Positions 1,918-61,507 of a DNA stretch of 63,840 nucleotides are shown here, piece by piece; positions within the stretch are counted from its first letter, which is position 1; the number at the start of each line of letters is the position of its first letter. The translations under genes and the position numbers were made by a program. Location of the stretch: NCBI RefSeq assembly GCF_000002075.1, contig NW_004797494.1, forward strand, positions 27,465 through 91,304. The letters run 5' to 3'. Origin of the DNA: Aplysia californica (taxonomy: Eukaryota). The notes beneath the pieces were generated by a model. That model had not been told where the DNA came from. It searched no databases and saw only the letters and a program-made list of their open reading frames with translations.

Positions 1918-2207
1918 CGTTTTAGTAAGAGTTTTACGACACTTGCAACACGATAGGTCATATAAGTGCCGAAGATTAGAGGTGTTACAAGAGAGTAACA
2001 AACAGGAAAAAGAAGGAGGAGAGATAGTTTTAGTTTTAGTAGAGGTTTTATGGCGCTCGCAATTGCATAAGGTCATATGAGCGCCAGAAGATTAGAGGTG
2101 TTACAAGAGAGTAACAAACATAAAAAAGAAGAAGGGGAGATAAGGACGATAGATGTTTGATAGGAAAGAAGAAGCAAACCACACCAGAGCACCCGCCAAC
2201 CAACCAC
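1918..2207 (-). mobile_element. Short retroelement family A (composite, two 3' tails)
   Basis: Head GTGGTTGGTTGGCGGGTGCTCTGGTGTGGTTTGC, hairpin tail then ACTAAA repeats; 11-bp TSD TACATGTCCCT at 1907-1917 and 2208-2218. Confidence 0.9.
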
Positions 2208-2844
2208 AGGGACATGTATATAGAGGATTTTTGGTACAAATAGAGGGTAAATATGTAAATTTCCTCAAACATAGAAGCATCACAAAGACTTACTACTAAT
2301 TTGATGTCAAATGTTTCAGCCTAAAAGAGCGCAAACTATCCACACTTAACATCCTAAAACAGTACAAACTATCCACACTTAACATCCTAAAACAGTACAA
2401 ACTATCCACACTTAACATCCTAAAACAGTACAAACTATCCACACTATTAATAGCCCAAAATAGCAAAAAGTAATGAACAATGTTTCTGTTCGTAGACAAG
2501 GAACATCTCACTAGAACTTTTGTTAGTTAGACAAGGAACATCTCACTAGAACTTTTGTTAGTTAGATTGTTAGACAAGGAACATCTCACTAGAACTTTTG
2601 TTAGTTAGATTGTTAGACAAGGAACATCTCACTAGAACTTTTGTTTGTTAGATTGTTAGACAAGGAACATCTCACTAGAACTTTTGTTTGTTAGATTGTT
2701 AGACAAGGAACATCTCACTAGAACTTTTGTTAGTTAGATTGTTANNNNNNNNNNNNNNNNNNNNNNNNNNNNNNNNNNNNNNNNNNNNNNNNNNNNNNNN
2801 NNNNNNNNNNNNNNNNNNNNNNNNNNNNNNNNNNNNNNNNNNNN

Positions 2845-3402
2845 CCCTCCACACCCACACACACACAGGTTACAGAGCCTCCAGGCTGATGTCACAGTGT
2901 AGCGGGAACACGGTCTGTCGGAAACGAATGATGGGTACATCAACGCTCACACACACACACACACACACACCCACGCACACACACACCCACGCACACACAC
3001 AAACAGCTTACAGGGCCTCCAGGCTGATGTCACAGTGTAGCGGGAACACGGTCTGTCGGAAACGAATGATGGGTACATCAACGCTCACACACACACACAC
3101 ACACACACCCACGCACACACACACCCACGCACACACACAAACAGCTTACAGGGCCTCCAGGCTGATGTCACAGTGTAGCGGGAACACGGTCTGTCGGAAA
3201 CGGATGATGGGTACATCAACACACACACACCCCCCACACACACAAACACACTCCCCCTCCCCCACAAACACACAGCTTACAGAGCCTCCAGGCTTATGTC
3301 ACAGTGTACCGGGAAAACGGTCTGTCGGAAACGGATGATGGGCACATCAACGCTCAAACACACACACACACACACCCACACACACACACACAAACAGCTT
3401 AC
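2845..3402 (-). repeat. Second copy of the exon-5-derived tandem array
   Basis: Four units of the same exon-end + donor + (TG)n motif. Confidence 0.95.
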
Positions 3403-3629
3403 AGAGCCTCCAGGCTAATGTCACAGTGTAGCGGGAACACGGTTTGTCGGAAACGGATGATGGGTACCCTGGCGTTGAGGATCTTGAACACGTTGGAGGT
3501 GCGGGGCATCAGCTCCACAAGGGAGGCGACCATGGCCAGGGTGCGCTGCGCCAGCTGTCGCTCTGTGCTGAATGTCTCTGTGATGAAGCGGAAGTTGTGG
3601 TTGGTCTTCCGGGATGAGACAGGCGCCGA
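3403..3629 (-). CDS. MTPAP: MTPAP exon 5, copy 1
   Basis: ERQLAQRTL...KILNARVPIIRF...CDIS (third catalytic Asp); ttctcag acceptor, GTAAGC donor; 227 nt, phase 2. Confidence 0.88.
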
Positions 3630-57971: not shown

Positions 57972-60049
57972 ATGAACTATGAGAACCCCCAGCAGCAGTA
58001 TTCGTTCAGTCATGGGTTGGCCAACGCTCCTCAGCTACACTTACAACAGCAGCGACAGCTGCAGCAGCAGCAACAGCAGCAGTTATTTCAGCAACAGTAT
58101 GGACAAGCGGTGTCCTCGTCCAACGTGTACCACCTCCAGTTCGCTGGCGGGGCCCCCGCGGGCAACAACTCCCTCCTGCCGCCACCGCAGGAAGAGACTA
58201 ATCCGATGGGCATGGCCGGGGGGCTGCAGGCTGCAGGCTTTCCCCCGCCGGGCCTAGTGCCGCAGCAGCTAGTCAAACACGGGGTGCCCGTCAACGTGGA
58301 CGGGAGCTCCATCCACGTGATCAGTGGCCTAGACGGGATGATCTATCCGCACCACAAGTCCGGAGGGTTGAAGATCATCCAGACGCCGGACGGCCGGTTA
58401 GTCCAACAACAGGATGGCACAGCTCTGGGCATGCAACAGGCAATCATCGGGGTGGACATGGTGGGCAACTCAGGGTTTGTGGATCAGAGTTTACAAAGTG
58501 TGGACGCACAGGGTCAGAGTGCGGGGATGAGGGGGAACGTGTACACCTACACGAAACACATTCACAACTGGGTGCAGCCTCAGCAGGTGACTGCTGCTAC
58601 TGTAGGGAACCAGGGAGCCACCGCTGGTCAAAGCACCCTTCCTTCCTTCGGACATTTGTGGTCACAGTTTCAACAGCAGAAGCAGCAAGTGGGTATTATT
58701 CAGCAGCAGCAACAGCAACAACAGCAGGCCCAGCACATGAGCCCGTTCCCCCAACAGCATCAGTTTTCCAATCATTTCCAACAACCCTTACCCTCCCCCC
58801 AGCCATTTACCACAGGTCCTAGCTTGCAAGCCGTGCCTGGCCTTCAGATGATCAAGATGCAACAGCCTCAGCAGAAACCACTTCCCGTGACTGCGGTACA
58901 GATGTCGACCTTGACCCAGCAGGCGCCCGACCAGCCTTTACAAATCTCGTGCCAGCAGCCAAAGTCTGTAGCATTTCCCTCCTCATCCGGGGCTACCATG
59001 TCTCCGACGGTCATCGCTGCCAGTTGCGTGTCGTCGTCATCATTATCATCATCCTCCTCTTCTCTGCCATCTTCAACCTTATCATCGCAGCCTCTCCCCT
59101 CCCCCGCCACCGTGAAACAATTGTCCAAAGCCGTGACGTTTGCCCAGACGGGGCCCCCAAAAGTTACTGTGACGCTGGACTCGTTACCCCACTGTGAAAC
59201 ATTCCCCAAGCAGTTTCCAGGTAAACCAGAATCGACGTCTTTCAGTTCCTCGGTGGAATCGTTGCATCCTGTCAAAACCTGTGCTGGGAAGGAGTCTGTG
59301 GTGAGCACGCCCCAGTGTGTGAGCAGCAAACGCTCATTGCCTCAACGGAACCAACATGCAGGTTCTGCAGGCAATAAAACGACAGCCAAGTCGCTGGCTC
59401 ACACTTCCTCCACTGGAAGCTCACTAGACAGGTCTTCCTCGGAATGTTCCAATTTTTCTTCCTCACCCTACACTCTGACCCCTCCTAACAGCATTGAATC
59501 CACTTTATCCCCTGTAGTTTCTCAGTTCTCCAAAGTCCCCTCGGACCAGGGTCAGCCGAGAAAAGCTTTTAAGTCGTCCACGTCATCGTCCTCATCACCA
59601 CCCTCCTCCCCACCTCCAACTCCCGGCTCTTCGTGTACACCAGACTTGTCACCGGCTAAAACTTGTCAGCCTCCCCTTCCTCCCCCTCCACCTCAGTCTC
59701 TGGGGAAAACAGCAACTACAACAACATCAACCTCGCTGGTTGTGGAAGTGACCACCTCCTCACCATCGCCTGTGACAGCGACCACAACCATTGCCCTGAG
59801 CAGTCACTCGATGAGCACCACGCCCACGTTTGTCATGGCCACCACTCCCAGTGCTAAAGAAATGTCCCTGAGCTCTGCCTCGGAGCCGCCAGTGGCACCC
59901 TGTGTACAAGGGGGACACAACAGTGGGAGGAAGTCGGCAAACAGTTGTAAGTCTTCGAAGACGCAAGAGGCAAAGGAGGGATCAAAACGGGTTAAGATTC
60001 CTTTCAGTTGGCAGAGGAAGCTGGATAATGGCTGCGTGGTCTACTTAAG
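57972..60049 (+). CDS. MBD5: MBD5/MBD6-like protein, first coding exon (Q-rich and S/P/T-rich region, start of MBD); gene continues beyond the window
   Basis: ~692 codons ending VKIPFSWQRKLDNGCVVYL|AG-GTATGT, resembling MBD5/6 'VP.GWQR.V....V.Y.SPSG'; exon acceptor at 57768. Confidence 0.78.
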
Positions 60050-60940
60050 GTATGTCTCTTATTTTTACTTTTTCCTCTTTCCGTTTCATCTTAGACTTCT
60101 TTTGATTATTGGTCGTTTTGTTATAATATAAATTCTCTAAGGAATATTTCCAAATACAAGTGAATCTTCTTTTGTTGACATTTCATGGGAGGGAGAATAT
60201 ATATATGTAATGAGTTGTAGAAGTTTTACTCCACCATTGACCCAGATAATTTTGGAGACGGGCTTCGACCCTGCCTGTCATGGCTAGCTGGGGATGAGAG
60301 AGATACAAAATGTCTCGGCAGAAAGGAGGAGATGTTCGTTAAAATTTCTCTCCCCGTCTGATCAGACGGAGGTCCTCTGTGTGCGCCAGGGAAGCACCGA
60401 ACTGCTGAGATACCACAGATGTTTGTTGGGAGGGAGGAAGACGGTCCATGGCAAGAGCAATGACTCCGACATCTTTCACATCCACTACTTTTGAAACGAC
60501 CAAAATATCGAAGGGACGAAATTTGTTCCAAACCTTTTTCTCATGCAGAATTACGACTTTGTTGTGATCTCTAACTCCCATTATGATTAAATTAAAGTGG
60601 TTAAACTATTTTAGTGATCAAGCCATGAGCATGCTACAAAAACACCTGCCTAGGCTGGCCTAATTGTTTTCCCCCCTTATATTGGCGGTGGTGGGCGAGA
60701 TGATCTGACCGTTCACTCTCCACTCAACTGTGATTGTCAGAACTAAGGCTCATAAATGATAAGATGAGATAAGGCAAACTTTATTGATCTTTGAAGAACA
60801 TTTTCGGAGGATATATAAAATTAATTAATAATATATTCCAGAACAGTAACAAGCAGAGGTCAGCATTAACACAGAGGTCAGAGGCTCAGAAATCCACTAA
60901 TTCCATTCATATTCAATAACACACATACACAAGGACAGTA

Positions 60941-61507
60941 GTTGGTTGGCAGGTGCTCTGGTGTGGTTTGCTCCTTTCCTCTCAAACATCTATCTTCCTA
61001 TCTCCCCTCATTCTTTTTTATGTTTATTACTCTCTTGTAACACCGCTAATCTTCTGGCGCTCACACGCTTACCCAAACAGTCTGTGGGCATGGACTAACT
61101 CTCTCTCTCTGTCTGGCTCTCTCTGCAGGTGGTTGGTGGGTGCGTTCTGCTGTGGTTTGCTCCTTCTTTGCTGTCAATCATCTGCCGTCCTGATCTCTAC
61201 TCCTTTTGTGTGTGTTTGTTACTCTTTTTGTAATGCCTCTGACTCTGATCTTTGACTCGGATCTTTGACTCTGATCTTTGACTCTGATCTTTGACTCTGA
61301 TCTTTGACTCTGATCTTTGACTCGGATCTCTGACTCGGATCTCTGACTCGGATCTCTGACTCGGATCTCTGACTCGGATCTCTGACTCGGATCTCTGACT
61401 CGGATCTCTGACTCGGATCTTTGACTCTGATCTTCGGCGTTTTTTAATATGATCTTATCGTGTTGCAATCACAAGTCAATGTGTCATAAAACTCTCACTG
61501 AAACTAA
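60941..61507 (+). mobile_element. Two family A elements; the second has an internal 12-bp minisatellite expansion
   Basis: Copies at 60941-61062 and 61128-61507; (tctgactcggatc)-like array at 61237-61432. Confidence 0.8.

Follow-up and report, generated by a model that had tools for sequence, protein, structure and literature searches.

Roughly 55–65% of the short and long interspersed nuclear elements (SINEs and LINEs) in mammalian introns lie antisense to the host gene. The intronic orientation of mammalian L1, long terminal repeat (LTR) elements, and SINEs is non-random with respect to transcription; for L1 the effect is weak, and whether it is set at insertion or by later selection is a long-standing dispute. 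A modest antisense excess has been described for the SINEs and LINEs of dog, human, and mouse (10.1101/2020.10.27.358119; PMC5717806), and according to Servant, Streva, and Deininger (2017; PMC5717806) transcription-coupled repair can set the orientation of L1 at insertion, acting against sense L1. This report concerns a 63,840-nt stretch of the 927-Mb genome assembly of Aplysia californica (GCF_000002075.1, contig NW_004797494.1, positions 27,465 to 91,304), referred to as the window, and three families of hairpin-tailed retroposons found within it, A, B, and C. The orientation of families A and B is likewise non-random with respect to transcription, and the same debate over selection and insertion applies. 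In contrast to mammals, as the initial annotation of the window had proposed, the bias is toward sense; at ~90–94% it is far larger than the mammalian one, and it is confined to two promoterless families; a sister family that carries the same tail does not show it.

Three other systems invite comparison. Introners are inserted almost exclusively in the sense orientation and are themselves the intron, with splice sites, whereas the Aplysia A and B copies are found within 3′ regions and introns larger than themselves, flanked by target-site duplications of the reverse-transcription type. The SIDER retroposons of Leishmania are short, degenerate, and mostly sense in 3′ untranslated regions, a bias tied to an acquired role in mRNA stability in polycistronic units; the Aplysia copies, unlike these, lie mostly deep in the introns of an animal genome. 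In stringent-type LINE/SINE pairs, such as eel UnaL2/UnaSINE1 and L2-clade partners, recognition is by a 3′ stem-loop, and to our knowledge no orientation bias has been described for them. The Aplysia elements have in common with such pairs a shared 3′ tail hairpin with compensatory changes, short-repeat ends, target-site duplications, and 5′ truncation. They differ from them in that A and B are without a small-RNA-derived head and that no partner LINE is identified here; none carrying the hairpin tail was seen within 336 kb of sequence. Some mollusc SINEs have L2-type tails (PMC4758252), and orientation was not analysed in the mollusc SINE surveys (PMC4758252; PMC11481361). A literature search found no described sense bias in molluscs or other invertebrates, which is not proof of novelty; as far as can be told, the reversed sign, the extreme size, and the element-type dependence of the bias are new.

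A profile of the shared tail detects 25 hairpin tails in the window, which fall into only four runs along the sequence: five minus (1920, 2034, 3659, 4658, 5915), thirteen plus (10090, 10857, 13970, 15347, 17646, 18099, 18173, 20404, 21600, 24216, 24403, 27467, 34714), four minus (35393, 36790, 38717, 40934), and three plus (48161, 56784, 61428). The chance of four or fewer runs is small (exact p = 1.3e-4), and all 25 tails are co-oriented with the genes of their blocks, which are MTPAP-like (minus), TUT1-like (plus), SKAP-like (minus), and MBD5-like (plus). The near-total sense orientation first noted for the window is therefore confirmed, with no exception among the tails, and the one degenerate exception noted near 56200–56310 proves to be a 55-nt head fragment with no tail. 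The switch from plus to minus between 34776 and 35393 falls between the stop codons of the convergent TUT1-like (31187) and SKAP-like (~37319) genes, where the flip had been placed. Tails 1920 and 3659 are counted once, as they lie in a duplicated segment beside gaps (946–2221 versus 2845–3737), and tails 18099 and 18173 belong to one element with a doubled tail; after discounting duplicates, ~22 independent insertions are present, all of them sense. The gaps of the window are unbridged, and the count relies only on the relative orientation of the scaffolded pieces, of which 4263–18352, 18660–22527, and 29858–38846 are backed by plus-strand exons and 22628–24737 and 25126–29382 are not (three of the five plus-block pieces). 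The hairpin-tailed copies are as follows.

1920–2026, minus: family A 3′ part, hairpin tail at 1920–1979, sense to the MTPAP-like gene
2034–2221, minus: family A, full length (tail profile and self-comparison)
3659–3737, minus: family A 3′ part abutting the gap at 3738, in the duplicated segment; this copy and 1920 are probably a single insertion
4657–4873, minus: hairpin tail 4657–4710 whose upstream body is a 35-nt tandem array (4716–4873)
5915–6099, minus: diverged family A copy
10090–10143, plus: tail-only (5′-truncated) copy
10857–10918, plus: tail-only copy
13858–14031, plus: family A, full length
15234–15406, plus: family A, full length
17441–17707, plus: family A with an internal deletion
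17988–18219, plus: family A with a doubled tail (18099–18158, 18173–18219)
20088–20459, plus: family B copy
21487–21663, plus: family A, then repeated tail units to ~22000
23868–24276, plus: family B copy
24297–24466, plus: family A copy
27125–27492, plus: family B copy
34222–34776, plus: family A split by a ~380-nt insertion (34222–34321, 34704–34776), 3.0–3.6 kb beyond the TUT1-like stop
35378–35779, minus: family B copy beyond the SKAP-like stop codon, with a minus-strand AATAAA after the tail at 35376–35381
36789–37290, minus: family C copy, tRNA-like head, same hairpin tail
38229–38418, minus: family B fragment
38717–38760, minus: tail fragment
40934–41101, minus: family A, full length
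47943–48213, plus: partial family C, tail 48161–48213, host transcript there not established
49279–49672, plus: family C body
56260–56314, minus: family A head fragment, 55 nt, no tail, the only antisense piece in the window
56675–56846, plus: family A, full length
60941–61063, plus: partial family A copy
61128–61503, plus: family A head 61128–61240, 13-nt tandem array 61198–61460, hairpin tail 61428–61503

The strands of the four blocks are set by the following genes.

4816–5100, minus: MTPAP-like nucleotidyltransferase exon (PF22600, E=1.3e-12), which sets the strand of block 1
12070–31187, plus: TUT1-like gene, exon-bearing frames 12070–12312, 13563–13733, 15515–15808, 19004–19201, and 29859–31187, stop at 31187
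37320–44578, minus: SKAP-like gene, SH3 exon 37320–37709, candidate PH exons 38426–38608 and 41607–41885, N-terminal exon 44294–44578
57930–60128, plus: MBD5-like open frame, 733 codons

Within the TUT1-like gene, frames 15515–15808 and 19004–19201 match PF22600, frame 13563–13733 has a weak RNA recognition motif match, and the frame that crosses the gap 29383–29857 is used from 29859 onward only. The SH3 exon of the SKAP-like gene matches PF00018 (E=1.4e-11) and is followed by a stop near 37319; the N-terminal exon has a single PDB match, to SKAP2, which is weak (E=0.63). The label MBD5-like is suggested by an MBD-like end motif read by eye, and no Pfam or PDB match was found for the 733-codon frame or for the large open frames of the window. 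Just upstream of the last SKAP-like exon and in frame with it, a 29-nt tandem array (37844–38345, minus) inflates the apparent open reading frame to 342 codons. Two occurrences of a segment with a family A tail and a 136-nt satellite (946–2221, 2845–3737) are set apart by gaps (2745–2844 and 3738–4262) and may represent either a tandem duplication or assembly redundancy.

Self-comparison of the window defines family A as a repeat of ~175 nt with sharp ends. Its 5′ end is GTGGGTGG, its body is pyrimidine-rich, and its 3′ end is a hairpin with the stem GGCGCTC/GAGCGCC or, in a second subfamily, GGCACTT/AAGTGCC, followed by a conserved end motif and then by ACTAAA-like A-rich short repeats. Families B (~390 nt) and C (~500 nt) have only the 3′ ~50 nt in common with family A. 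The 7-bp helix, scored over 38 tails, shows pairing in 89% of cells, as against 31–54% in slid controls, with compensatory changes at two positions (seven sequences each); individual copies fold with z = -3.4 and -4.0. Target-site duplications of 10–12 nt surround at least eight full-length family A copies (e.g., kinesin loci L005, L014, L040, L012, and L020), differing in sequence from copy to copy with no common motif, and 5′-truncated, tail-only copies occur among the hairpin-tailed elements. Variable target-site duplications together with truncated copies are the signature of target-primed reverse transcription, and the retroelement identity proposed for the window holds on these duplications, the A-rich repeat tail, and the conserved hairpin. 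Families A and B are non-autonomous, non-LTR, LINE-mobilised retroposons with a LINE-type 3′ recognition tail; in having both target-site duplications and a shared, structured short-repeat tail, they belong with the LINE-dependent non-autonomous retroposons (SINEs in the broad sense).

The heads of the families differ. In A and B no A or B box is visible by eye, and searches gave no Rfam match up to E=10 and no ARAGORN hit; the identity of a canonical RNA polymerase III (Pol III) SINE is rejected for them, as there is no tRNA-, 5S-, or 7SL-type head with A and B boxes. The head of family C, by contrast, has tRNA-like A and B boxes as read by eye and appears tRNA-like, although neither Rfam nor ARAGORN calls it as a tRNA. 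Reading the hairpin tail as that of a Helitron or Helentron, elements with fixed 5′ TC and 3′ CTRR termini and no target-site duplication, is rejected by the target-site duplications, by the 5′ end GTGG, and by the likeness of the families at the 3′ end only. An introner-like identity is rejected as well, since copies lie within larger introns, several per intron, and in some cases beyond stop codons; the copy at 3474–3597 of locus L012, for example, lies inside a 357-nt intron flanked by two kinesin exon hits. A 21-mer from the family A head has 46,447 genomic matches, half on each strand, and family A numbers at least 46,000 copies. Divergence from consensus is 9.1% for A, 7.8% for B, and 8.3% for C, and the three families are of the same age.

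Beyond the window, a whole-genome Pfam search for the kinesin motor domain yielded exon-by-exon hits in 33 genes, and the stretches from the first to the last collinear exon hit (272 kb) form a sample that is intragenic by construction. Tails in these spans are sense in 65 cases and antisense in 10, or 47 and 3 in spans of at most 10 kb; the sense share across the kinesin counts is thus 87–94%, rather than the modest antisense excess of mammals or the value near 50% that would have spoken against a general bias. Among the 23 genes with copies, 21 have a sense majority, one an antisense majority, and one a tie. Four spans of great length, in which nested transcription is possible, account for seven of the 10 antisense exceptions. 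The least diverged family A copies are 17 sense and 0 antisense. Independently of any annotation, listed family A neighbours less than 25 kb apart have the same orientation in 31 of 40 cases, and in a merged map of heads and tails neighbour concordance drops to 50% beyond 20–50 kb; the concordance therefore decays on the scale of genes, not of replication domains. In one region (contig C1, 1290000–1465000), nine of nine listed family A heads are plus while 12 of 16 other hairpin tails are minus, a discord for which a local surplus of family C copies, or an overlap of transcription units, might account.

It is the two headless families that are biased; neither the tail nor the reverse-transcription machinery carries the bias by itself. 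In kinesin introns family A is 45 sense to 3 antisense and family B 15 to 1, whereas family C is 6 to 4 (A and B versus C, Fisher p=0.0096). On contig C1, 41 of 49 family A copies are oriented like the nearest other A within 20 kb; the nearest A is matched by only 8 of 17 family C copies (p=0.008 versus A with A) and by 3 of 6 tRNA-derived SINEs. For same-family neighbours less than 25 kb apart, the share with like orientation is 9 of 10 in family B, 11 of 20 in family C, and 7 of 11 in the tRNA-derived SINE. Since family C is unbiased despite having the same tail and age, the bias is not a property of the tail. The claim of sense orientation for all three hairpin-tailed families accordingly stands for A and B and fails for C, and with it falls the notion that the hairpin tail carries the bias.

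Other repeats in the same introns show no such preference, as had been noted for the window. In the kinesin introns the sense to antisense counts are 6:10 for a miniature inverted-repeat transposable element (MITE), 4:4 for a piggyBac-like MITE, and 7:4 for the (TAA)n-tailed tRNA-derived SINE. Graph-clustered de novo control families were dropped in favour of these per-family counts, because MITEs with inverted ends gave spurious skews. An argument from tail-only copies (12:2) was also dropped, several of the supposedly unique upstream sequences being diverged C copies or other families. Within the window the comparison elements are the following.

13118–13444, minus: control tRNA-derived SINE with a perfect B box and a tail of (TAA)n, lying antisense in the TUT1-like gene; the other copy, at 27506–27812, is sense
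41958–42409, strand not assigned: control MITE with terminal inverted repeats; other copies at 33741–34154 and 40143–40342
55420–55737, strand not assigned: control piggyBac-like MITE with TTAA ends; other copies at 19703–19884 and 31647–31899
26579–27046, minus: LINE RNase H fragment (PF00075, E=3e-5), antisense to the TUT1-like gene

The copies within one gene are independent insertions. Family A copies of the same gene diverge by 14.6% and those of different genes by 15.0%, and for 2 of 43 copies, where 2.1 are expected, the closest relative is found within the same gene. Local duplication or hopping within a gene is rejected on this ground, same-gene copies being no more alike than others. 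Their distribution is also non-uniform: family A is over-dispersed (variance/mean 2.46 per 100 kb), and for 42% of its copies a further A lies within 10 kb, where 21% would be expected (p=2e-5), whereas family C and the tRNA-derived SINE are Poisson-distributed (variance/mean 1.0 and 0.74) and show no enrichment in A-rich territory. Sense family A copies reach 2.2–2.7 times the genome-wide density per orientation in kinesin introns (p=0.0005–0.004), and antisense copies number 2 against 6–7 expected from the genome average. Neighbour concordance is 0.84, where uniform insertion followed by antisense loss predicts 0.56–0.69 (p=5e-5 to 0.015). Together, the clustering and the concordance reject a model in which copies insert uniformly and antisense genic copies are then lost.

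Further candidate causes were set aside. A strand-asymmetric target motif is rejected, as the duplications are heterogeneous, the T>A skew of kinesin introns is only 0.07 (with T > A in 36 of 40 loci), and the antisense excess of ACTAAA in these introns outside elements (63 sense, 89 antisense) predicts the opposite bias. Toxicity of the antisense tail is rejected, as antisense family C copies retain intact tails, and a change of machinery over time by the equal age of the three families. The initial annotation had offered transcription- or splicing-coupled targeting or selection against antisense copies as explanations; of these, uniform insertion with antisense loss and selection on the tail fall away, leaving coupling specific to A and B or selection on their bodies together with regional targeting specific to A.

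The explanation favoured here, though held tentatively, is that the sense bias may be set at insertion, through coupling to transcription of a kind specific to A- and B-type RNAs. New copies are made by target-primed reverse transcription, and the RNAs they stem from form a genome-wide pool. As families A and B lack their own promoter, their source RNAs are presumably RNA polymerase II (Pol II) transcripts, and ribonucleoproteins carrying these headless RNAs would integrate preferentially into transcribed DNA. A sense copy places both the first nick and the cDNA on the template strand (PMC5717806), and by analogy with that geometry the template strand would be the one nicked; priming of the cDNA there would leave the element on the coding strand. 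The tRNA-headed RNAs of family C, which have the same tail, would integrate regardless of transcription, a difference that a Pol II origin of A and B RNA could explain. In its widest form, to be entertained with slightly more reserve, the proposal is that target-primed reverse transcription is strand-specific and coupled to transcription, that host transcription could thereby set the place and direction of tens of thousands of copies, and that Pol III-made RNAs with the same tail integrate at random. Insertion coupling would cover location, orientation, and family specificity with one assumption, and it fits both the unrelaxed bias of the least diverged copies and the modest asymmetry, given below, of AATAAA, the strongest known harmful hexamer; GTAAG and TTTTAG show no depletion in the same introns.

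Several points weigh against insertion coupling. The insertion stage is read from assembled copies alone, and we know of no mechanism that favours template-strand priming. The documented transcription-coupled effect, exerted by transcription-coupled nucleotide excision repair on L1, runs the opposite way (PMC5717806): there, template-strand intermediates are removed and an antisense bias results, whereas here template-strand events would need to be favoured, and for some RNAs only. The machinery that serves A and B evidently places family C at random, and the model must therefore assume an unproven dependence on RNA origin; it also leaves the sharp 5′ ends of A and B RNAs unexplained. The clustering was measured on one 6-Mb contig with exact-match copies only, the genes sampled (237 kb) belong to one protein family, and the family C samples are small (10 and 17). 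Finally, fast and strong selection on antisense A and B bodies, combined with regional targeting of these families, would also yield biased young copies.

Purifying selection of this kind is a serious, if somewhat unlikely, rival. Copies of A and B would insert both ways, antisense bodies would harm the host transcript through cryptic splicing, double-stranded RNA formed with sense copies, R-loops, or promoter interference and be quickly removed, and sense copies would be tolerated. That the bias tracks the body, with family C unbiased behind the same tail, is as expected if particular sequences matter, and the shortfall of antisense family A in kinesin introns and the concentration of antisense exceptions in long introns point the same way. 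Selection does produce strand asymmetry in these introns, where AATAAA outside elements occurs 173 times sense and 295 times antisense, and part of the mammalian intronic bias has been attributed to it (PMC5717806; PMC3088655). Yet selection needs an added regional insertion preference specific to A, which is clustered and gene-dense while C with the same tail is Poisson; it also requires that two unrelated bodies both be strongly harmful in antisense and the body of C harmless. A scan of both strands of family A for splice-site and poly(A) motifs found no consistent strong signal in the antisense strand, the GTAAG core held by the antisense tail is present in the family C tail likewise, and the youngest copies show no relaxation of the bias. 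An improbable variant reverses the argument and supposes that sense copies are retained because they are useful or self-favouring in transcripts, as a pyrimidine-rich element, an ACUAAY branch-point-like site, or a poly(A) site. The excess of sense copies over the genome average, the pyrimidine-rich body with ACTAAA repeats in the tail, the RNA reads that pass from tail into A-runs, and the family B tail with AATAAA directly after it where the SKAP-like gene probably ends (both described below) would suit it. Individual benefit is unlikely, however, for tens of thousands of copies deep in introns, and ACTAAA outside elements is if anything depleted in sense.

Two explanations that dispense with transcription or with biology are weaker still. 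L1 has a weak preference for fork direction, and if genes were co-oriented with forks born at promoters, insertion coupled to replication on the lagging strand could mimic a gene-strand bias; the flips in the window do fall at a divergent promoter region in one case and at a region of convergent gene ends in another. This is very improbable, as concordance is lost on the gene rather than the replicon scale, as 94% agreement with the gene strand would require near-perfect co-orientation of forks and genes, and as family C, inserted by the same machinery, shows no bias. Least probable of all is that the copies are not independent, through segmental duplication, composite elements, or assembly errors. 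Within the window a duplicated segment does lie next to gaps, and one element does have its tail doubled, but same-gene copies are no more similar than others, individual copies carry their own target-site duplications, 21 of 22 unrelated genes agree, and control repeats in the same sequence are unbiased; at the level tested, this explanation is refuted.

For the question of insertion versus later selection, Aplysia is a cleaner system than mammals, with a bias of ~90%, the opposite sign, at least 50,000 copies, and a built-in control in family C. If the bias does arise at insertion, it would reveal that transcription and reverse transcription into the genome are connected in a new way, and it would explain the tolerance of a very dense intronic repeat load. 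In practice, the way A and B copies point allows the direction of local transcription to be predicted in a poorly annotated genome.

RNA evidence was drawn from three poly(A) RNA runs over 33500–39499. The unique parts of this interval have almost no depth and are uninformative about the strand and the transcript end of the SKAP-like gene; almost all of the reads there derive from repeat copies elsewhere. Reads are in 1.1–2.2-fold excess in the elements' own direction, a value not interpretable apart from the library protocol. In all three runs hundreds of reads per run pass from an element 3′ end into an A-run (34767; 36789–36796), and in run X22, 219 reads have 30 T on the plus strand before 36789. 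These reads fit polyadenylated, element-bearing transcripts without proving them, and may instead derive from the A-rich tails of copies elsewhere. The family B tail at 35376–35443 (minus) is directly followed by AATAAA, ~1.9 kb beyond the SKAP-like stop, and this copy may supply the poly(A) signal of the SKAP-like gene.

Minisatellites lie in or beside hairpin-tailed elements at 4716–4873, 61198–61460, 15655–17130, and 25197–25571 (units of 35, 13, 42, and 41 nt), and in two cases the array stands in place of the head-to-tail body. The piggyBac-like MITE at 55420–55737 has an internal 68-nt duplication, and its copies occur in several kinesin introns in both orientations. Elsewhere in the assembly, ABC-transporter ATPase hits (C54:96372–136584, C2556, C2371, and C220) fall in intronless open frames of up to 2363 codons, several of them clustered; these could represent genes without introns, or else mobile or foreign DNA that entered the assembly.

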